DNA of 64,000 nucleotides from Paraphysomonas bandaiensis (taxonomy: Eukaryota; Protista; Chrysophyceae): NCBI GenBank assembly GCA_965644295.1, contig CBFFRP010000432.1, positions 186,001 through 250,000 on the forward strand, in the 5' to 3' direction. Every line of letters starts with the position of its first letter. Within the stretch, counting starts at the first letter, position 1. Shown one piece after another: positions 5,852 through 56,593 of the stretch. Position numbers and translations under genes: made by a program. The notes under the pieces were generated by a model, which saw only the letters and a list, made by a program, of their open reading frames with translations, was not told the DNA's origin and searched no databases.

Positions 5852-6811
5852 TACATACATACATACATACATACATACATACATACATACATACATACAT
5901 ACATACATACATACATACATACATACATACATACATACATTCATACATACATACATACATACATACATACATACATACATACATACATACATACATACAT
6001 ACATACATACATACATACATACATACATACATACATACATACATACATACATACATACATACATACATACATACATACATACATACATACATACATACAT
6101 ACATACATACATACATACATACATACATACATACATACATACATACATACATACATACATACATACATACATACATACATTCATACATACATACATACAT
6201 ACATACATACATACATACATACATACATACATACATACATACATACATACATACATACATACATACATACATACATACATACATACATACATACATACAT
6301 ACATACATACATACATACATACATACATACATACATACATACATACATACATACATACATACATACATACATACATACATACATACATACATACATACAT
6401 ACATACATACATACATACATACATACATACATACATACATACATACATACATACATACATACATACATACATACATACATACATACATACATACATACAT
6501 ACATACAAACATACATACATACATACATACATACATACATACATACATACATACATACATACATACATACATACATACATACATACATACATACATACAT
6601 ACATACATACATACATACATACATGCATACATACATACATACATACATACATACATACATACATACATACATACATACATACATACATACATACATACAT
6701 ACATACATACATACATACATACATACATACATACATACATACATACATACATACATACATACATACATACATACATACATACATACATACATACATACAT
6801 ACATACATACA

Positions 6812-6843
<32 letters not shown>

Positions 6844-6845
6844 CA
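5852..6845. repeat. (ACAT)n tetranucleotide microsatellite, ~1 kb
   Basis: About 250 units with isolated substitutions at 5941, 6181, 6508 and 6625. Confidence 0.99.
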
Positions 6846-7119
6846 CCTACAGCCTATAATATGCAGCAGTATACCTATAGAGCAGGAGTACGAGTACGTG
6901 TACAAGTACCTCCACACATAGATATATGTACACTCTACGTGCTATCCAGACTACCACATAACCACAATTAAACTCAGCGCACTCCCGCTTTCCTCTCCTC
7001 GTGTGCTTTTCTCGTGTTTTTCACTCATTGATCGAGCTCTTAGCGCATATGATAGCGACCCATACAGATAAAATGGCTTCGTAATTACTGCAAATAGATC
7101 TGCTCGACTGCGTGGAGGA

Positions 7120-37403: not shown

Positions 37404-38037
37404 CCTTTACACCTCACCTCTTCTACAATACAATCGACTGATCCTCACTATCACTTACCAATATCATAACGTAACCAGTATACAGATAACTTCTACTGGT
37501 CAGTCTGTGATGGTATATCTTCATATGATGAGGTGTCATGTCTATATATGTATGTATGTATGTATGTATGTGCATGTATTCATATGTTAAGTTCTAGTAC
37601 ATAAACACAACTGCTATGAGAAGAATACAGTGTATAATAAAGAATACACAACACTTTCTGTACAAGTGTGTGTATAGAAAATATATAAGGATGGTAATAC
37701 AGTCTGTATTATGTGTATTCCGTTTCCGTTTCTGGTATGATATGGTGATGATGATGTCTGTAGAGATGGTATAGTGATGAAACTGCCGAAGGTTGTTATG
37801 AAGATTGCCGTATAAGAATACGGAGGATAGATATGGGCACTTCCGTATGGATATATACGTATGTGTGTATGTATGCATGTATGTATATATGTATGTATAG
37901 AGGGAGTGTAGTATATAGTTGTTAGCTGTGTATGTATATGTATATGTATATGTGTATGTATGTCATGGTATGGCTTCTATATCATACTTCCATACCATCA
38001 TAACCTAATCAACCTTCTGTAGCATCATATAAGTGTA

Positions 38038-45996: not shown

Positions 45997-46872
45997 TGTA
46001 ATAACCAGCTATCAGGTTATTCTACTCTACAAGCTCTCTATTGTATATGCTTAAGTTTGTACATACTATCTGTGCAAACATAGATTGAATATTATTATTA
46101 TTACCATAACTCACACTGAGATATATGATGTATTATGACTATGACAATTCATGCTTATTATTGATATTTACATAATCATTCAAAAGACAAAGAGAGACAT
46201 GATTATCAATAATGAGACATAATGATGATACTGATGATGGATGATATATATATATGTTCTTATTATATATATATATTGACTTTAAGGCTGGAGAAGTTTA
46301 CTGGAGAATTCCGGGTTTGATATCCACGCTGATAGATGTGTATTGCCAGATTATCCAGTAATACAGTTATACATTACGTATTTCCTTCAGTGCTTATTGG
46401 GGATTGATTGTACTAAGGAGTACGAATACCAGGCTTCAACTACAAAGAGAATACTGAATGTATCTTCCCTTATACAGTTGTGATGAGTTATTATGATCAA
46501 CTGTGTTAGACTGATGTGTTTGGTATTGAATATGAATGATGTTCATTCCATTGATCACGGAATCGTAGGTAGACATATTTATATTATTGATAATAAGATG
46601 CAATTTCCTTACTCTTGAAATTGCTGGTAGATAGCATTGTAGTTGTAGACATATATTTGTTCATTGTGATTTGATTATATTGTTATTATTATGGAGGAGG
46701 AGACTCTTGATAGCGCACAAGAGTCTACTAAATTCGAGTCAGTGAGAAGGACCCTCAGGCTTATGCTTGGAGGGTTAGACCCTTCCATTGCCAATGCCAG
46801 TGAGGATCAAATCCGGGATATAGGCTTGGCATTTGGGTTGTCTGAGATCGAATCAGAGACGTTGGTGTCTCA
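45997..46872 (+). repeat. 5' LTR
   Basis: TGTAATAACC...GGTGTCTCA; matches 55398-56273 at a constant offset of 9401 with no difference seen by eye. Confidence 0.97.
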
Positions 46873-49800
46873 ATTTTTTAAGGAAATTTCATCTCTCAAT
46901 CAACAAAGTGACGACTTTAGAGAGACAGAAACTCATGAAGCAGACAGTCAAGCAACGACTGTTCCAGAACTGGTGGATCGTCTTAGTAGTCCGGAGGAGG
47001 AACCCTTGTCAGCCCGAAAACCTCTCGCATTCGGTAAGGACGCTATTCAACCATTGAGGGCTCAGGATGATTTTTGTTCATTTGATGCAGATGCGACAGG
47101 AGATAGTCCAGTACATATGGACCCCTTGCCATTCAAGGGACAAAGTAACAGGGAGGATGAGGATAAGGAGTGTCATTACACACCCTTACCTCACGCAGGG
47201 GATGAAGCACACAATGTGCTACATTCCACCTCTGGATTGCAAGGTGTATATAACACCAGCAGACCAGACCAACTAGGTAGAGATGCGGATAGGTGTCAAA
47301 TCTGTCAGCGACTCACAGATCCCAAGCGTCTCACCGCAGGAGGAATATGTTATTATTGCTCGGAAAATCAATGTATCGATTGTAAGGACCAGGTAAATTC
47401 AATGGAAATTCAGGGTGGTCTATGTTATCGATGCCGAGTAAGAAGGGGGATACTCAGATCAAAGAGACCCACCACAGACACATTAGAGAAGTGCATAATA
47501 TTGGGCCATAGAAGATTGCGTCCTCGGCCAGACCTAAACGAGGACACATATATGGAGCATTTGTACCTGGATCGTGGGGCTAGAGACCCTATGGACCTAA
47601 AGATTTCTCTTAACATCCTGCAACAGTACGCAGATCGACGGAGGGTACATACCACCAGATGGTCAAGACAGCGATACACCGCTCATATAGCAGAGCCACT
47701 GCAGCATTGGGAGCAGCAGATTTACATGGCTTGTACAGCTACTGAGGTCACTGATCGTTTACAGGACCACTTTTTTGAGCAAATGAAAATAGCAAGAGAG
47801 AGTTCTGCGGAAGATATTTCTCAGCTTGCCCAACTAGTCTTAAATCGAGGAAACGGCTTGCAATTACCATCAAATGTTCGCGAGTGGTTAAGTAGGCTGA
47901 CAGTTCTTGACAATGTACATGAGTTAGTGGCTGAAGAGCACATTTACGAAACAGCGGAATTGTGTATGGTGCTGAACCAATACCTTGATATAAGAGACAT
48001 GGCTGAAACTATGTGGGAGGAGGCCGATAGCCAACTAATGATGCGCTGCAACCTCCTCAGCAAACAACTCAGTCAGCAAAATAAAAAATTTGGATCTTGG
48101 GAAGAGAGGACCGTTGACTCTGACGATGAGTCATACCACTCCTTCGTCAGCAATGGTAGTCGGGGTTCCTTTGTCAGCAGAGGAAGTCGGTCAGCGGATA
48201 CCAGATCAAGTACATCCCGAGTGTTGAGTTCTAGGGGTTCAAGATCGAATTCCCGTATTTATCCAACTGAAGATGGCAGACTGCTAGACGCACAAGCATT
48301 CGGGTGTCACCTTCAACAAATTGGAGAGCAACACTGGTCACTGCTCTGTAACCAAATGCGATCGTCTAGAGCCATGCGGTTAATGTCTAAAGCATTGCCC
48401 AAAGCTACTCCATGGAGAAGAGAAGTCAAGGAGCCTACTCTCTACATGAAGACTGATGACAAGATGCGTCTAGAGAAAGATCATTCTAATCGATACCCCA
48501 TTGAAAGAGGACTCCGTTTTGCTGTCCAGAAGGCACGTCAGGCCAAGATGGGGCTGAAAGATTTGGTCATACAGACAAAGAATGGTTGGTGTTTTAAGGG
48601 CGGCTTTAAAGAGGAACTGCAACGGTTGTCTTTGAATCGTGTGCCAGAGATATGGGATGACCAGGAGGATAGCCAATTAGCCACTGAATATGAATTTTGG
48701 ATGCGTCGTTGGGTGCATTTCTGCCATTGGGCTATCCGTAATTATTGTCCCGTACAGACCAATGAACAGCGTGCCAAACAGATTGAGGACTGGGCTGCTC
48801 CTGATCTCGCTACGCCTACAGCAGTTATGCAACTATATTATGAACTAAAAGAGGTAGTTGAACATAATACGCCGGATCGCCAGACGGCACAGGTGATGGA
48901 AGAATCTATGCGCCGAGTGGTAGGAAAAGAGCCTGTTTGGGGTAAATCGTTGGTTGCAGCGTACGACAATAAGATCACAAAAATTGAAAGGGCGAAGTCG
49001 ACTGAAAATTGGAGTCTATCATGGGAGGAGGTAGAATCAATCTGGCGAGAGATTCAGGAAGAATTCCAGCAGGGAACGCTGCTATACATTATACGTCCTG
49101 ATGTCCAATCTAGTAAACAACCAGACACAACTAAGGGTGAGGGTGGCTTACGACGACATCACAAAGTTCATGCCGGCATACGCGAGGAACCCAAACCATC
49201 TCTCACACCGATTGAGATTGCGAAGCTTACATGTTCACGATGTGGCCTTCGACATAGTATTAACAACGCTCAATGCCGACGCATCACGAATGGGAAATTT
49301 GACCCACTTGGATTTGTGTCTGAGACACCACGTAACATTGAAAGGAATCGAATATACAATTTTTGGTTGTCCAGATTGAATAAGTATAGCCAACCTTGGT
49401 CTCAGTTGCCTACGGCTCAGAAGGAGGAATTTCAGGCAGCATTTCGGGATTTGACTAGCCGGTGGGATGGAGGGAGTGCTTTGCATACGACATTCATTGG
49501 TGGCGAACGGAAGAAATCTAATTCCATAGCATCAAGTGTTTCTAGTACACCACAAGTACATTGGGCGGATAGTGATGATGACTCTTCTTTCTCTACACTG
49601 GATGACTCTATACCTGCTCACAGTACAGACTCACTTTCCGGTTCACGATCTACTAAGTCAAAATCAAAACCCAAACGAAAGGTTCATGCTGCACAAAAAG
49701 TTCGATACTTAGTGCACACTGTGACACCTAGGGATGAATCTCAAGATACATTATCCATGTTTCGTGTTCTATATGATACAGTTGATGAAACTGGTAAACC

Positions 49801-50761
49801 AGTACAGAGAGTCGGTTGGCACCAGGTGGATCATGGCTCTATGGAGTCCTTGATCGACGAAGAGTGTGCAGCCCTCTTGAATCTTAAGCGAGTACGAATC
49901 CCAAAGAGAGACCGGTACATTATTCGGGGAATAGGTTCACAGGATATCGCTGTGAGTTGGAGAGCTTGTCTTACCTACACTGTTACTGCACAACGGGTCT
50001 TACCTGTGGCAGTGTTGCCGGGAGAGGCACCACTTTTGAACAATGCAAAGGAACCAGTTCAGTTGAAAGCATGGATACCAATTATCCCTAATTGTTCCAT
50101 GAATGTAATCTTTGGAGGTCATGCATTACGACGTATCAAAATGATTGACTTGTTTGATCATAAACTGCTGTTGTTCCAAACTAATGGTATTCAGTATGCA
50201 ATGCCTCAATTCAACTGGAATGAAACTGTTACGCAAATGGCATCAGCTCAGGACCCTGTGGTACAGAAATGTGTTGCACGCCATCTCCGTGAAAACAAAC
50301 CTCAACCTCACAAGGCTGCAGTCTGCATATCGAAACATATCCCACCGCATTCTAAGATGCGGATTCCTGTTCAAGTGGGCAAGGGTGCTCCGTTAGGTGG
50401 ATGGATACAGACTCTGCCAGAGGTTGCAAGGATTAATTCAGGTGATGATGCTAATGAGCCCGTCTTACAATTTGAAGATGCTATTTGTACGGCGAACAGA
50501 CCTTATATATGGGCTTCTAATCATACCGATGATTGGATACATCTACCGGGTAGACCGCGTTTAGTTGTACGACTTCAACCCATATTATTGGGGATGCAGG
50601 TTCATAATCAGGAGACGGTGGAAACTGCTATGAATGGCAGTGTCGAGACGGAGGATACCACTATCATGCCTACTGATGACAAATTCCAGCATTCAGATAT
50701 TTCTATGTTATCTGAAGAGAATCACGAAAATGTCACTAGGCTGGTGTCCTCATCGAAATGA
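46691..50761 (+). CDS. gag: Retrotransposon ORF1: Gag plus aspartic protease-like domain
   Basis: 1356 aa. Four CxxC pairs (47294-47434), knuckle CSRCGLRHSINNAQC (49232-49276), protease-like VDHGSMESLID...IFGGHALRR. Confidence 0.85.
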   Translation: MEEETLDSAQESTKFESVRRTLRLMLGGLDPSIANASEDQIRDIGLAFGLSEIESETLVSQFFKEISSLNQQSDDFRETETHEADSQATTVPELVDRLSSPEEEPLSARKPLAFGKDAIQPLRAQDDFCSFDADATGDSPVHMDPLPFKGQSNREDEDKECHYTPLPHAGDEAHNVLHSTSGLQGVYNTSRPDQLGRDADRCQICQRLTDPKRLTAGGICYYCSENQCIDCKDQVNSMEIQGGLCYRCRVRRGILRSKRPTTDTLEKCIILGHRRLRPRPDLNEDTYMEHLYLDRGARDPMDLKISLNILQQYADRRRVHTTRWSRQRYTAHIAEPLQHWEQQIYMACTATEVTDRLQDHFFEQMKIARESSAEDISQLAQLVLNRGNGLQLPSNVREWLSRLTVLDNVHELVAEEHIYETAELCMVLNQYLDIRDMAETMWEEADSQLMMRCNLLSKQLSQQNKKFGSWEERTVDSDDESYHSFVSNGSRGSFVSRGSRSADTRSSTSRVLSSRGSRSNSRIYPTEDGRLLDAQAFGCHLQQIGEQHWSLLCNQMRSSRAMRLMSKALPKATPWRREVKEPTLYMKTDDKMRLEKDHSNRYPIERGLRFAVQKARQAKMGLKDLVIQTKNGWCFKGGFKEELQRLSLNRVPEIWDDQEDSQLATEYEFWMRRWVHFCHWAIRNYCPVQTNEQRAKQIEDWAAPDLATPTAVMQLYYELKEVVEHNTPDRQTAQVMEESMRRVVGKEPVWGKSLVAAYDNKITKIERAKSTENWSLSWEEVESIWREIQEEFQQGTLLYIIRPDVQSSKQPDTTKGEGGLRRHHKVHAGIREEPKPSLTPIEIAKLTCSRCGLRHSINNAQCRRITNGKFDPLGFVSETPRNIERNRIYNFWLSRLNKYSQPWSQLPTAQKEEFQAAFRDLTSRWDGGSALHTTFIGGERKKSNSIASSVSSTPQVHWADSDDDSSFSTLDDSIPAHSTDSLSGSRSTKSKSKPKRKVHAAQKVRYLVHTVTPRDESQDTLSMFRVLYDTVDETGKPVQRVGWHQVDHGSMESLIDEECAALLNLKRVRIPKRDRYIIRGIGSQDIAVSWRACLTYTVTAQRVLPVAVLPGEAPLLNNAKEPVQLKAWIPIIPNCSMNVIFGGHALRRIKMIDLFDHKLLLFQTNGIQYAMPQFNWNETVTQMASAQDPVVQKCVARHLRENKPQPHKAAVCISKHIPPHSKMRIPVQVGKGAPLGGWIQTLPEVARINSGDDANEPVLQFEDAICTANRPYIWASNHTDDWIHLPGRPRLVVRLQPILLGMQVHNQETVETAMNGSVETEDTTIMPTDDKFQHSDISMLSEENHENVTRLVSSSK

Positions 50762-53700
50762 GTAGACGGCAAAGAGGTGAATCGGCCACCTCCGGAGCCA
50801 CCGCCTGTTAACATAGCCGATACGACTTCGGATTGTCCACGACCGGAGTCATTCCCTGTGGAATTATGGAATTTAGTGGATTTGTGTCAGCGAAATTCAG
50901 TTCAACCACGATTTGACAAGTACACTCCTGACCGTCTTCAAGAGTGTATTGAACTGATTTTAACTAAGCTGGATATATATAAGGATGATGAAGCAGTCTC
51001 GTTGCAAGGGGAGATTTCTATCGACGCGGATACTATAGCTTCACATCATAATGAACGTGATTATTTTTTGGCTCAAGCTTTGGCCAATATTGATGTTTTC
51101 TGTTTTCCTGATCCCGATAACCCTCCACGGATTAAGGATTATAAAGTGAGTATTGAAACTACTGATGAAGTTCCGGTTCGGGCGCGACCTCGGAAATATT
51201 CTTTATTGCAACAAGCATTTTTAGAGGCTAAAACTGGTATGATGCTTCGTCAGAAAAAGCTTCAACCCTCAAACAGTGATTGGAGCCATGGTTTAGTTCT
51301 GGTTCCTTATCATGACCGTATTCAGAAATTTTTAGATAAATGGGGAGACACGGCACATTTAGAAATCTTCAAAAAGGTTAATTGGCCTGAAGTGGCCACA
51401 TTTTTTCGGATGTGTTCAGATGTCCGATCGCTCAATCAGAAAACTAAGGTAGATATTTTTCCACTTCCCAGGATTGATGACTTGCTAGATAGCATTCCTG
51501 TGGGAACTGACCGGTTTTCAGCGGGCGATATTGCTGATGCATTTTTCTGTGTGGAGCTTGACGCTGATAGTCGATTTAAAACGGCATTCCGCACTCATAA
51601 CGCTCATTTACAGTATACGGTGATGTTACAAGGCTGGGTCAATGCACCTTCACACTTTAGTAGAGTCATTGCCCAGACTTTTGAAGACATGGATCGGTTT
51701 CAAGTCTCTGCATACCTGGACGATGTGCTTAACCATACTGGGGGTTTTCGTGCACATTTCCTGACACAGCAGTCCATATACGATAGACTTCGAAATCGTC
51801 ATCTTACATTTAAAATTGAAAAGACTCATATTAATTATCGGGAGCTGCGGTTCCTTGGACATATTCTGTCCAGAAACGGCCGATGCCCTGATCCGAAAAA
51901 GGTTGAGGCGATTACAAATCTTGCAGACCCAGAGGACGTTACGGCTGTTCGATGTTTTTTAGGAAGTACTTCATTCTACCGTCAGTATATTCCTCAATAC
52001 GCAGACGTTGCGTTGCCTCTGTATGACTTGACGAAGAAAAATGTCAACGTGAAGAAACTCTGGCGCCCTGAGATACACGGCCATGCCATGGAGAGGCTTA
52101 AAGAGGCGCTGCGGAAGGCTCCTGTGCTTCGTTACATTGATAATTCTAAACCGTTTGTCATTCACCTGGATGCTTCCAAGACAAAGCGTGGTATCGGTGG
52201 GGTTCTCATGCAGCATGATGACGCAGGGCAGCTCCATCCGGTGGAATATTTCAGTCGTAAGTTAACTCCTGCTGAACGAAATTACTCGGCCACGGATTTG
52301 GAATGTAAGGCCCTCAGGGATGTTATTCTCCATTGGCATATTTATCTGAGTAGTGGTCGTAAATTTGAAGTCCACTCTGACCACAATTGCCTGAAATATA
52401 TGGTCCATTCAGTGACTGCAACACTTAATCCACGATTGCTGGGATACCTCATGGATCTTCAATCATATCGTTTTGCTTTACATTACAAAAAAGGGGTGGA
52501 AAATGTAGTTGCTGATATGTTAAGTCGCCTTTGGCAAATAGGGGATGTACCGCCAGCTACTAGGGAGGAGCTCTCCGATCATCTCGGGCCGGTGGTTGAT
52601 AATGAGGATCCAGACCTCATCCGATCATGGGGGGCTGCAAAACGACAGTTGAGTAAATTGAAACGCCAAGCGGTTGTGGAGGCGCAAACTATTAAGAAAA
52701 CTCATACTTGCTCTAGCAAATTTGAGGTTCAAATCTGTAATTGTGATGCGCTGGATTTGGATTTGTTGTCTTCTTTGACTAATGTCAAGAAAGGGGGAGT
52801 ATTAGGGGAAAGTTCAGAATTAGAAAATTCTGAAGTTAGATTTAAAGTGGCTGGCTCTACATTAAAAAGAAGGAAACAGCCGAGCATCGATGTAGAACAA
52901 TATAGTTGCCAGGTTGAGAATCTACTTAAAGAATTGAATATTACGGAAGTCCAGGAAACTGGTGAGTCAAGGATGAAATTCAGCAATTCGGGACAGAATA
53001 TACAACATGCAACTGCACACTCGAACCGAACTAGCTTTCATCCATCTCGAACAAACTATATGGATAATCCAGATGAGTCAGAAGATATGAAGTTAATTCG
53101 AGAACGACGAATTTCTGGTTACAATCAATGTACTATTCTTCCATCGACAAAGCTAAAAGCAGGATGGGGACTTTTTGCCACCAAACAGATCTGTCCAAAT
53201 GTTGAGATTTGTGATTATGTGGGTCCGGTTGTATCTGAAGGAGTGGATCAATTAAGCTCCAATTATGGGATGCAGATGATTGCTGGAGCACATCGTAAGA
53301 TTGTTATTGATGGATGGGAACCTGGTTCAAGCTTAGGTCGATATGCGAATGATGGGATATCCAAACAATTGATTAATGCGAAGTTGATATGGAAAAAATC
53401 TAAAGGAGTTTTGATGGCTCTTAGAGAGATCTTGCCTGGGGATGAAATATTTTTTGACTATGGTAAAGAATTTTGGAGTACTAGAAGTGATCAACTTAGT
53501 CCAGAAGATAATCAAATTCTGAATTTAGATGGATCTCGACGGAAGACTACCGTGTCTTTTAAAGATGAATTTGAGTTAATTGTGTACGATCAAAAACGGA
53601 AAGTTCAGGAGAAACTATATTCCAAAATCTTTAAGTACAGCGATGAAGAAAATTCCAGAATCCAGGAACTTGTTGAGATGGAGGAACGAAATACTAGGAA

Positions 53701-55342
53701 TTTCGAGAGAACTCTCCGATATCTAGAAACCGACGCTTTGGAGAAGTACTCTTATGAGAACCTAGTACAATGCCAATCACTTGCTGACGAATTGCAATAT
53801 CTGGTAGGCAGAAAGTATATTGATGACGATAATTTCCAAAAATATGAGATTGCTTCAATACATTATGATGAAATGCATAAGTTAGTGGTTGGTCATAGGA
53901 GGCCTTTGTCAGGGAAATTGGATAGATATGATACTCACCCATTCGCCGTATGTGGAGAATCTGGATTATGGGAGTTATCAGATCAATATTTATTAGATCA
54001 TCCGGAAGAAGATCCGGAGATTAAGTGGCCTTCGAGTAGAGAGAGTATGTTTCAGATCCAAGAAAATGATACTCAACTTGGATTGATTATATCACAGTTA
54101 TCAAATTTTGAAACTGGCCATGAGTTAGAAGTGGATGGTCATGTTTACAAGTTACATGAGAATGCAGATGAACCATCGCACAAGACACTATTGAGAAAAC
54201 ATGTTCAGAAAAACAAGGGATCAATAGATTGGCAAATTATGGTCCCTCAGGTGTTACGTTTTCAACTAATGAAGTATTTCCATGAAGGATATACGCATCC
54301 AGGAACACAACGAATGCTTGAAACTTTGAAATTGAGATATTTTTGGCCGTCAATACGCAAGGATGTACAGAAACATGTGGAGGAATGTATACCTTGTAAA
54401 TTACGTAAGACCTATCAAACGCGACCAAAGATTCCAATAATGAAATACCCTGATGCAAAATTTCCTTTGTCACGAATACATATTGATTTAACAGGAAGAT
54501 TGGTGAAAACCAAAAGTGGTTTCAGTTATATTCTAGTGGTAAAGGATTTCCTTACTAAATTTGTTTGGCTTATGCCTCTTAAGAACAAGACGCCTTTGGA
54601 AGTGGCTAATGCTTTGATTACTCATGTGTTTTGTCCATTTGGGTTACCAGAATTACTGGTGAGTGATAAAGGCACAGAGTTTGTCAATAAACTGACCAAA
54701 GCAATATCCAAGTTATTCAAGTATAGAAGGATTAACACTACTCCTTATACTCCAAGGAGTCAGGGTTTAGTTGAGAATCACAACAAGACGTTGAAGGATC
54801 AGTTATACCATTTTGTAGGTGTATTACAGGATGACTGGGATATATTTTTGCCTACAGTACAATTGATGTATAATACTACAGTGTCCTCGAGCACAAGTTT
54901 TACTCCATATTATATGATGTTCGGTAGAGAATGCCGTTTACCATCTATAGAGTTTACATTGTCCTCGAAACTTTCCGAGCTTCGATTACAACCTGGAACT
55001 ATTGAAGCTGAATGGATAGATAAATTGTTGATTTCTTTGGAACAAGCTTGGAATTATGCAACGAAGAAGGCTCAAAAGAATCATCTTCGACATAATATAG
55101 TATCTAGGCGACCTCGAGAGTTCAAAGAATATAATGCTGGTGACTTATTCTTCAGAATTCGACGTCCAATTAATGTGTTTAAATCGGCTGATGATGAGGA
55201 ATTGTATAAAATCAATGCCAAATTACAAGCTAGATTTGAAGGACCTTATAAAGTTATTCGGCGACTAAGTCCAATACTTTATGATGCTGAAATTGAAGGA
55301 AAAGAGGTTCGAATAAATGCTACTAATATGAAGCCATTTTAG
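50762..55342 (+). CDS. pol: Retrotransposon ORF2: RT - RNase H - SET - integrase, in frame with ORF1 after a single TGA
   Basis: RT: FPLPRIDDLL, KTAFRT, YLDD. RH: LDASK...YFSRKL...NVVADMLSR. SET: GWGLFA...RYAND...EIFFDYG. IN: HEGYTHPG...CIPC, HIDL, SDKGTEF, VENHNKTL, FEGPYKV. Confidence 0.97.
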   Translation, partial: VDGKEVNRPPPEPPPVNIADTTSDCPRPESFPVELWNLVDLCQRNSVQPRFDKYTPDRLQECIELILTKLDIYKDDEAVSLQGEISIDADTIASHHNERDYFLAQALANIDVFCFPDPDNPPRIKDYKVSIETTDEVPVRARPRKYSLLQQAFLEAKTGMMLRQKKLQPSNSDWSHGLVLVPYHDRIQKFLDKWGDTAHLEIFKKVNWPEVATFFRMCSDVRSLNQKTKVDIFPLPRIDDLLDSIPVGTDRFSAGDIADAFFCVELDADSRFKTAFRTHNAHLQYTVMLQGWVNAPSHFSRVIAQTFEDMDRFQVSAYLDDVLNHTGGFRAHFLTQQSIYDRLRNRHLTFKIEKTHINYRELRFLGHILSRNGRCPDPKKVEAITNLADPEDVTAVRCFLGSTSFYRQYIPQYADVALPLYDLTKKNVNVKKLWRPEIHGHAMERLKEALRKAPVLRYIDNSKPFVIHLDASKTKRGIGGVLMQHDDAGQLHPVEYFSRKLTPAERNYSATDLECKALRDVILHWHIYLSSGRKFEVHSDHNCLKYMVHSVTATLNPRLLGYLMDLQSYRFALHYKKGVENVVADMLSRLWQIGDVPPATREELSDHLGPVVDNEDPDLIRSWGAAKRQLSKLKRQAVVEAQTIKKTHTCSSKFEVQICNCDALDLDLLSSLTNVKKGGVLGESSELENSEVRFKVAGSTLKRRKQPSIDVEQYSCQVENLLKELNITEVQETGESRMKFSNSGQNIQHATAHSNRTSFHPSRTNYMDNPDESEDMKLIRERRISGYNQCTILPSTKLKAGWGLFATKQICPNVEICDYVGPVVSEGVDQLSSNYGMQMIAGAHRKIVIDGWEPGSSLGRYANDGISKQLINAKLIWKKSKGVLMALREILPGDEIFFDYGKEFWSTRSDQLSPEDNQILNLDGSRRKTTVSFKDEFELIVYDQKRKVQEKLYSKIFKYSDEENSRIQELVEMEERNTRNFERTLRYLETDALEKYSYENLVQCQSLADELQYLVGRKYIDDDNFQKYEIASIHYDEMHKLVVGHRRPLSGKLDRYDTHPFAVCGESGLWELSDQYLLDHPEEDPEIKWPSSRESMFQIQENDTQLGLIISQLSNFETGHELEVDGHVYKLHENADEPSHKTLLRKHVQKNKGSIDWQIMVPQVLRFQLMKYFHEGYTHPGTQRMLETLKLRYFWPSIRKDVQKHVEECIPCKLRKTYQTRPKIPIMKYPDAKFPLSRIHIDLTGRLVKTKSGFSYILVVKDFLTKFVWLMPLKNKTPLEVANALITHVFCPFGLPELLVSDKGTEFVNKLTKAISKLFKYRRINTTPYTPRSQGLVENHNKTLKDQLYHFVGVLQDDWDIFLPTVQLMYNTTVSSSTSFTPYYMMFGRECRLPSIEFTLSSKLSELRLQPGTIEAEWIDKLLISLEQAWNYATKKAQKNHLRHNIVSRRPREFKEYNAGDLFFRIRRPINVFKSADDEELYKINAKLQARFEGPYKVIRRLSPILYDAEIEGKEVRINATNMKPF

Positions 55343-55386
55343 GTTCGCAGTGAACTTCGTTCCGCATACTGGCGTATGCGACTGCT

Positions 55387-55397
55387 GGAGGGGGTAG
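55387..55397 (+). other. Polypurine tract
   Basis: GGAGGGGGTAG immediately 5' of the 3' LTR. Confidence 0.9.
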
Positions 55398-56273
55398 TGT
55401 AATAACCAGCTATCAGGTTATTCTACTCTACAAGCTCTCTATTGTATATGCTTAAGTTTGTACATACTATCTGTGCAAACATAGATTGAATATTATTATT
55501 ATTACCATAACTCACACTGAGATATATGATGTATTATGACTATGACAATTCATGCTTATTATTGATATTTACATAATCATTCAAAAGACAAAGAGAGACA
55601 TGATTATCAATAATGAGACATAATGATGATACTGATGATGGATGATATATATATATGTTCTTATTATATATATATATTGACTTTAAGGCTGGAGAAGTTT
55701 ACTGGAGAATTCCGGGTTTGATATCCACGCTGATAGATGTGTATTGCCAGATTATCCAGTAATACAGTTATACATTACGTATTTCCTTCAGTGCTTATTG
55801 GGGATTGATTGTACTAAGGAGTACGAATACCAGGCTTCAACTACAAAGAGAATACTGAATGTATCTTCCCTTATACAGTTGTGATGAGTTATTATGATCA
55901 ACTGTGTTAGACTGATGTGTTTGGTATTGAATATGAATGATGTTCATTCCATTGATCACGGAATCGTAGGTAGACATATTTATATTATTGATAATAAGAT
56001 GCAATTTCCTTACTCTTGAAATTGCTGGTAGATAGCATTGTAGTTGTAGACATATATTTGTTCATTGTGATTTGATTATATTGTTATTATTATGGAGGAG
56101 GAGACTCTTGATAGCGCACAAGAGTCTACTAAATTCGAGTCAGTGAGAAGGACCCTCAGGCTTATGCTTGGAGGGTTAGACCCTTCCATTGCCAATGCCA
56201 GTGAGGATCAAATCCGGGATATAGGCTTGGCATTTGGGTTGTCTGAGATCGAATCAGAGACGTTGGTGTCTCA
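55398..56273 (+). repeat. 3' LTR (includes a duplicate of the first ~61 gag codons)
   Basis: Matches the 5' LTR and explains the short ORF at 56092-56289. Confidence 0.97.
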
Positions 56274-56593
56274 TTTTACCTCGCCTTAGCTAGTAGGTAG
56301 CAGAGAGCGCAAATGTAAAATATCATTTTGGTTGTGTTTTTTGGTTAATAAAATTTCGTGTTTTTATTCGGTTGAAAGAGCACCTAGATGCAGTCGGGAA
56401 GTTGGAAATAATCGTTTTCCCTGTGGTTGGACTCTGCCCATATAGATATCTCTTTTCGTTCTTCCGCCCCCCTTCCTTGAAATTACTGCAGCTATGTTGC
56501 ATTGGTTAGACCTTACTACAAAGACCTCATTTTGTTCTGTATTGTGAAGCTACGTGAGCATCATTTGCGCCTATCATTATTAAAACTCTATAC

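Follow-up and report, generated by a model that had tools for sequence, protein, structure and literature searches.

What does an in-frame TGA do between the protease (PR) and the reverse transcriptase (RT) of a retrotransposon? The question is raised by a stretch of 64,000 nt from Paraphysomonas bandaiensis (contig CBFFRP010000432.1, positions 186,001 to 250,000; hereafter the window), in which a complete, very young Ty3/gypsy-like long terminal repeat (LTR) retrotransposon occupies positions 45997–56273. An earlier note, made from the sequence alone, had proposed that this TGA is read through with the help of a 3′ pseudoknot and had kept a simple nonsense mutation as the alternative. The comparison with genomic copies and diverged relatives described below favours, with a probability of about 0.8, a programmed leaky terminator whose read-through would be promoted by a 3′ stem-loop that may be part of a pseudoknot. 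The two open reading frames (ORFs) and the codon between them were the following:

46691..50758, + strand: ORF1 (1356 aa), with a Gag-like region, a putative protease of retropepsin fold and some 190 conserved residues of unassigned fold
50759..50761, + strand: in-frame TGA, candidate read-through codon, next base G, context AAA-TGA-GT
50762..55342, + strand: ORF2 (1526 codons, ending in TAG), with RT, RNase H (RH), SET and integrase (IN) domains by Pfam

The junction had been read correctly to the base: the TGA ends ORF1, ORF2 continues in the same frame, and the single frame from 46691 to 55342 (2,884 codons) contains this one stop.

The stop in genomic copies and relatives

In the 62.5-Mb genome, TGA was carried by all of the copies that cover the site (9/9), and no sister copy with a sense codon was found among the aligned family members. 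In eight of the nine both ORFs were intact, the frame being open for 1363 codons before the TGA and for 1526 after it. The copies were 99–100% identical around the stop, and the eight intact ones differed at 78 sites over 6,042 nt (45 synonymous and 33 non-synonymous), with neither stops nor indels. On the 3′ side of the TGA (50762–54100) there were 21 synonymous and 18 non-synonymous differences and, once again, no stops; in the RT-RNase H core the ratio was 7 to 2. These differences indicate that both ORFs are under purifying selection as coding sequences. Since the copies diverged while both ORFs were selected in this way, a dead ORF2 is hard to reconcile with them. The only polymorphism within the 63-nt signal was an A/T at 50764, in the spacer, which is synonymous (GTA/GTT) and of the T type in four copies.

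Relatives were sought by a word search with ORF2, which returned many metagenomic RT-RH-SET-IN proteins, and contigs were taken where the predicted N-terminus falls at the junction. The comparison comprised six lineages, the window and five metagenomic relatives (L063–L067), whose contigs were reached through protein look-ups; the ORFs on each side of the stop were searched separately. In all five relatives an upstream ORF lay in the same frame and TAG-G stood at the homologous codon, giving a G directly 3′ of the stop at 6/6 sites. The relatives were 55–59% identical to the window over the N-terminal region of ORF2 and formed one clade with it (Shimodaira-Hasegawa-like approximate likelihood ratio test, SH-aLRT, 98). 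After the stop, two variable codons were followed by Gly-Lys, a variable stretch and Glu-Pro-x-x-Val, and the Lys, Pro and Val codons varied solely at the third base; this stretch is therefore translated in that frame. Long intact frames were present on both sides of the stop in L063 and L064, and L066 had breaks elsewhere in the element. In L065 (9813–9925) an extra frame change was seen besides the TAG, about 100 nt downstream and beside a run of C; either mutation or misassembly may account for it. No further relatives were obtained from metagenome contigs (searched with alignment A3 and with a degenerate DNA motif encoding WSHGLVLVPY), from genome contigs or from viral contigs.

That the codon has remained a stop across this large divergence, and has even changed between TGA and TAG, excludes a chance nonsense mutation. 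The alternative kept by the earlier note thus falls on three counts, namely TGA in 9/9 copies, purifying selection and TAG in the five relatives. A more elaborate form of it, a disabling mutation in a non-autonomous lineage that relies on other elements for copying in trans, would draw on the near-identity of the nine copies near the stop, which could share one master, and on the existence of a private in-frame TGA in another metagenomic element, L069. Against it, no stop-free copy was present in the genome, and the one further related family there shares 44% identity; ORF2 is under purifying selection, and in five diverged relatives the homologous codon is also a stop, written with another triplet. 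It is considered very improbable.

The L069 (P0072) TGA lies near the junction and was rejected as a further case: it is a private lesion, because its near-identical sister P0052 is fused and both the G-K…E-P motif and the stem are absent, and the element belongs to another clade. It was left out of the structure alignment.

Reassignment of the codon was also weighed. UGA is reassigned in some protists, and it could be a sense codon in this host through a variant code, or encode selenocysteine through a selenocysteine insertion sequence (SECIS). The frame contains one TGA in 2,884 codons, and none was found inside four full-length HSP70 genes (which end in TAA at the canonical C-terminus) or inside dozens of transposon ORFs of more than 1000 codons from the same genome. 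Moreover, selenocysteine cannot explain the TAG that the relatives have at this site. Of all the explanations considered, UGA as a sense or selenocysteine codon is the least credible and is for practical purposes excluded.

Two observations on the copies stand apart. The non-synonymous differences concentrate in the RNase H-SET linker (window 52778–53021), and those of the linker are common to the copies on C119, C123, C201, C210 and C207, which suggests sub-lineages or recombination between copies. In addition, a degenerate relic of the family with many stops (L010, C297:799961–800440; 77% nucleotide identity) has homology that starts exactly at window position 50812, just 3′ of the hairpin described below, and its upstream part is unrelated. 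Owing to this truncation the relic is uninformative on the stop.

The stem-loop 3′ of the stop

The RNA elements predicted downstream of the stop were the following:

50762..50773, + strand: spacer of 12 nt to the upper stem, purine-rich, including the 5′ arm of the lower stem (GGC, 50768–70)
50774..50792, + strand: upper stem-loop (stem 1), GAGGTG (50774–79), a 7-nt loop and CACCTC (50787–92); found in the RNAfold minimum free energy structure and the RNAalifold consensus
50797..50799, + strand: 3′ arm of the lower stem, GCC, within the conserved Glu-Pro codons
50816..50821, + strand: candidate 3′ arm of stem 2, GCCGAT, complementary to the loop ATCGGC (50781–86)

A hairpin was present at the same place in 6/6 lineages, with differing sequences. 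The arms of the upper stem (5′ / 3′) were:

Window: GAGGTG / CACCTC
L066: GGAGGG / CCCTCC
L067: GAGGAC / GTCCTC
L065: GAGGGA / TTCCTC
L063: GAGTGAT / ATCATTC
L064: GGGTGATC / GATCACCC

Each hairpin was closed by an invariant GGC/GCC triplet pair, with a small internal loop between the two stems. RNAalifold, run on a MAFFT alignment of the six lineages, recovered the same bipartite stem-loop independently. In the alignment 95.4% of the paired cells were complementary, compared with 33–51% when the 3′ partners were slid by 1–3 columns. Five of the seven upper pairs had changed on both sides, and the observed covariation score was reached by one of 500 shuffles. The changes in the hairpin substitute the encoded amino acids, and therefore it is the pairing, not the peptide, that is kept. 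Hence, the stop is conserved, and the stem-loop is conserved and covarying.

Over the six lineages the lower stem started 6 nt and the upper stem 11–12 nt after the stop. For 3′ structures that stimulate read-through, a spacer of 7–12 nt has been described (PMC3159437), and the predicted start of the stem is in line with this range. A perfect 6-bp hairpin located 6–14 nt from a given position occurred at approximately 2.5–2.8% of positions, both in this element and over the window as a whole. An Rfam scan of 50650–50950 with E values up to 10 returned one chance match, to an unrelated family, and no read-through-site family.

The H-type pseudoknot proposed for this site survived in part. The coordinates given for the stems, the loop and the spacer, and the GGC/GCC extension of stem 1 (50768–70 / 50797–99), were all exact. 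The search for compensatory changes, also suggested then, supported stem 1, as described above; stem 2 was matched at the same position in only two of the five relatives. In steric terms the predicted geometry corresponds to the pseudoknot of murine leukaemia virus (MLV): stem 1 has 6 bp, loop 1 has 1 nt (50780), stem 2 has 6 bp and the last loop has 23 nt, with 0 nt between the 5′ arm of stem 2 and the 3′ arm of stem 1. The duplex between the loop and the downstream arm was calculated at −9.2 kcal/mol, a value equalled by none of 1000 control windows from the same ORF, and a hairpin with a perfect 6-bp partner of its loop in the next 45 nt occurred at approximately 0.2% of positions in the element and the window (p about 0.002). 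A position-specific test against the 12 nt homologous to 50814–25 found pairing in L066 (6 bp including one G-U, p = 0.008) and in L065 (5 bp, p = 0.03), with a Fisher p of 0.03 over the five relatives; when the position constraint was removed, the values for the relatives were p = 0.06–0.6. Furthermore, the GCCGAT arm can alternatively form a nested pairing with CGGC (50767–70), and RNAfold picks this nested form in the window and in L066. The pseudoknot is consequently put forward tentatively for the window family, at somewhat less than even odds, and by this comparison it does not appear to be a conserved feature of the clade.

The same conservation bears on splicing, by which a short intron removed from some of the transcripts would eliminate the stop and leave the unspliced RNA to encode Gag-PR. 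GT and AG dinucleotides do flank the stop, and an excision from 50744 to 50776, for instance, would be in frame (33 nt); Copia-type elements are known to set their Gag:Pol ratio through splicing. However, the nearest AG acceptor (50764–65) is destroyed in four intact copies by the change from GTA to GTT. The G-K, E-P and V codons after the stop are conserved with third-base variation, the upstream sequence of the relatives is unrelated, and coding-type conservation begins two codons past the stop. Moreover, a covarying hairpin at read-through distance would have no role in splicing. This explanation is regarded as improbable.

Proposed mechanism and known systems

According to the read-through explanation, most ribosomes would terminate at the TGA and yield Gag-PR. 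In a minority, a near-cognate tRNA would insert an amino acid at the UGA and translation would continue in frame to give Gag-PR-RT-RNaseH-SET-IN. The stimulator would be an RNA structure starting between 6 nt (lower stem) and 12 nt (6-bp upper stem) past the stop, and the G at position +4 would probably help. In the window family, pairing of the hairpin loop with 50816–21 may add an H-type pseudoknot like that of MLV. The route to RT-RH-SET-IN suggested by the earlier note is strongly supported by the comparison of sequences; read-through itself, how efficient it would be and what stem 2 would contribute are inferred from it.

The remaining alternative is that the TGA is a true terminator and ORF2 is made separately, from an internal promoter, by internal ribosome entry or by re-initiation. 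A precedent exists in the Tca2 element of Candida, whose junction held a minor promoter and gave no read-through in S. cerevisiae (PMC2194720), and the hairpin could serve another purpose. Several features of ORF2 argue in the opposite direction. It begins with 159 codons without an ATG, the first ATG falls within clade-conserved sequence and varies in position among the relatives, and coding-type conservation begins immediately past the stop. The earlier statement that no ATG precedes the RT domain is nearly correct: it holds if the domain is taken with its conserved N-terminal extension, inside which the earliest in-frame ATG (codon 160) lies, and fails for the Pfam RVT_1 match (residues 215–369), which that ATG precedes. 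In addition, RT and IN would escape the usual packaging if they were produced separately from Gag. Separate expression of ORF2 is therefore held to be unlikely, and read-through remains the preferred explanation.

Several points weigh against read-through and its proposed stimulator. The lower stem (pairs 10–12 with 42–44 of alignment A4) was invariant in all rows, which leaves no room for covariation, and it coincides with conserved codons; for this reason it proves nothing by itself. The local fold was not significantly more stable than shuffled sequences (z = −0.86), so the case rests on comparison and not on energy. A stem-2 counterpart was missing at the same position in L063, L064 and L067. 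The comparison covers six lineages only, some of them close pairs (L063/L064) and several on short metagenomic contigs, and the tree was obtained by a quick search. Finally, Tca2 combines a UGA with a predicted pseudoknot and gave no read-through in a reporter (PMC2194720); such signatures can mislead, and it is mainly because of this precedent that the confidence was held at the value given at the outset.

Retroviruses and RNA viruses provide well-documented cases of read-through with a 3′ RNA structure. In-frame stops that are read through are an established feature of gammaretroviruses and an accepted one of several LTR retrotransposons, namely Tj1, Tosmo, Tcry1, Tca2 and Skipper (PMC10085805). 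To our knowledge, read-through in LTR retrotransposons has mostly been inferred, always at the Gag/Pol boundary, and recoding signals in protists are hardly known to us. No description of read-through at the PR/RT boundary, or of the hairpin of the window, was found in the literature.

The closest parallel is the gag-pol junction of MLV, where the signal consists of a UAG, an 8-nt purine-rich spacer and an H-type pseudoknot (PMC3159437). In MLV both stems are needed, and the protease belongs to the read-through product. Both have an in-frame stop before pol, a G at +4, a purine-rich spacer and a compact 3′ structure; L063 and L064 share with MLV the start TAG-GGA-GG, and a pseudoknot of the same topology (6-bp, 1-nt, 6-bp and 23-nt), here as read from sequence, is possible in the window. 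The window differs in having UGA instead of UAG, a spacer of 12 nt (6 nt to the lower stem) instead of 8, a stop after the protease instead of before it, a stem 2 that is not conserved in the clade, and no match in Rfam. A stem 7–12 nt past a leaky stop, supported by compensatory substitutions, is also shared with the class of extended 3′ stem-loops described in alphaviruses, tobra-, furo- and pecluviruses and the Drosophila genes hdc and kelch (Firth et al., 2011; PMC3159437). In that class the stems are 10–14 bp and the loops about 100–270 nt long (PMC3159437), whereas the window has a compact bipartite hairpin (3 + 6–8 bp, loop of 7–12 nt), in a protist retrotransposon.

Among retrotransposons, one in-frame stop separates Gag from PR-RT-IN in Tj1, Tosmo1-3 and Tcry1 of fission yeasts (PMC10085805), and an in-frame stop is attributed to Dictyostelium Skipper in a citation given there (PMC10085805). 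As in the window, pol of these elements and of Tca2 is in frame with the upstream ORF, with one stop between them that is kept in related elements. The context in Tj1, Tosmo and Tcry1 is GAA-TGA-CT, with no structure described (PMC10085805), in contrast to AAA-TGA-GT and the covarying hairpin of the window. In Tj1/Tosmo/Tcry1, Tca2 and Skipper the stop lies between Gag and PR-RT-IN, whereas the window has PR upstream of the stop.

The gag(PR)/pol junction of alpharetroviruses and the pro/pol junctions of betaretroviruses and deltaretroviruses use a −1 frameshift after PR, at a slippery heptamer. A recoding site at the PR/RT boundary, putative in the window, is common to these viruses and the window, so that the protease would be made in the amount of the upstream partner and RT-IN in a lesser one; the difference is that in the window the ORFs are in the same frame with a stop between them. 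The location after the protease, which had been called unusual, is thus unusual for read-through and not for retroviral recoding in general.

The window would hold a phylogenetically supported read-through site at a different boundary (PR/RT), with a conserved TGA/TAG stop and a compensating stem, in a family that bears a SET methyltransferase domain and belongs to a little-studied eukaryotic lineage. With a length of about 65 nt the site would serve as a small read-through cassette for tests in protists. It also calls for caution in annotation pipelines, in which such elements get split into two 'genes'.

Protease, wider group and element

The placement of the stop depends on the domain that precedes it:

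49751..50218, + strand: protease domain, predicted retropepsin fold (AlphaFold model and Foldseek), active-site motif D-H-G-S at 49829–49840

The Pfam scan of ORF1 was silent, with no protease at E < 0.01. An AlphaFold model of the ORF1 C-terminus was built on the final 340 residues, aligned over six sequences, and residues 1–185 of this model reached a predicted local distance difference test (pLDDT) score of about 70–90. Foldseek matched this part best to the RVP domains of DDI1 and to proteases of retroviruses (E 6e-6, prob 1.0), and DDI1 was also hit weakly when PDB sequences were searched with a profile. The domain ahead of the stop is thus modelled as a retropepsin fold, in agreement with the protease proposed earlier, which locates the stop after the protease.

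The active-site motif was D-H-G-S in the window and D-P-G-S in L063–L067 and in the second family described below (L058); the canonical D-S-G-S was found in L075 and L078 of an endonuclease-bearing clade. That a high dose of protease offsets a weak enzyme is speculation. The approximately 190 residues from the protease to the stop (50220–50758) were conserved in the clade, with the motifs DPVV, IPIK.GK, EPTIC.AD and ITPV; this region had a pLDDT below 50 in the model and no family match.

The position of the stop was then compared among more distant elements. The same genome contains a second gypsy family with a SET domain (contigs C463, C476, C75, C339 and C661; L058–L062), 44% identical in RT; in this family one ORF, up to 2,219 codons long, spans Gag, a protease-like region and RT, and the PR/RT junction has no stop. 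No stop was found at this junction either in a large clade with an Exo_endo_phos (endonuclease) domain upstream of RT. Two contigs of this clade were examined, and both had an in-frame TAG-G at the Gag/PR boundary (L078:4476–4478 and L075:9754–9756), which precedes the canonical D-S-G-S motif by 185–236 codons. Many of the N-termini predicted for this clade lie close together, a short way upstream of a KDPGR motif common to its members, as a conserved stop at that place would lead one to expect. In L078 and L075 the TAG-G lies between a long Gag ORF and PR-EEP-RT-RH-SET-IN, and GC-rich hairpins occur downstream; it is a second putative site of read-through, here at the canonical boundary.

In-frame stops seem, by these sequences, to be habitual in the group, with the clade of the window using another boundary. 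Single ORF, stop before PR and stop after PR would form a natural series for the study of the Gag:PR:RT ratio and of the movement of recoding sites. A fuller proposal, to which we would give nearly, though not quite, an even chance, is that of an undescribed SET-bearing Ty3/gypsy group of marine protists in which the read-through site moved from the Gag/PR boundary, where the endonuclease-bearing sister clade has its in-frame TAG-G, to PR/RT, with a new covarying hairpin and, in the window family, an MLV-like pseudoknot acquired by convergence, so that PR, with its atypical D-H/P-G-S motif, would be made at the dose of Gag and RT-RNaseH-SET-IN would be rationed.

Four other loci were set aside. 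L068, a candidate for −1 frameshifting, had no stop at the junction; its frame changes within a conserved stretch of a long-read contig with 9x coverage, probably through an error. The second such candidate, L070, was a member of the endonuclease clade. L076 (endonuclease clade, with breaks) and L077 (truncated by the contig end) were uninformative.

The ends of the element were defined by its LTRs:

45997..46872, + strand: 5′ LTR (TG…CA, 876 bp), from self-BLAST with the ends read from the sequence, TTTT on both flanks
55398..56273, + strand: 3′ LTR, from self-BLAST, preceded by the polypurine tract GGAGGGGG (55387–94)

In the self-BLAST the stretch 45997–46877 paired with 55398–56277 at 99.9% identity. 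The LTRs are identical or nearly so, and the insertion is therefore recent. The hallmarks of Ty3/gypsy elements were found, namely two TG…CA LTRs, TTTT flanks (target-site duplication) and a polypurine tract. The order of domains is likewise Ty3/gypsy-like, the putative retropepsin fold being followed by Pfam RVT_1, RT_RNaseH, SET, Integrase_H2C2 and rve, with the SET domain as an insertion ahead of IN. The sequence 3′ of 46872 starts with ATTTTTTAAGG, and no TGG-type primer-binding site was recognized there by inspection alone. The ATG of ORF1 sits 182 nt within the 5′ LTR (46691–46872), and the frame continues across the LTR end. Elsewhere in the window, a 1-kb tandem array with a period of 8 nt was observed at 5852–6851, and a related stretch of 125 nt lies inverted 31 kb away (37845–37972).

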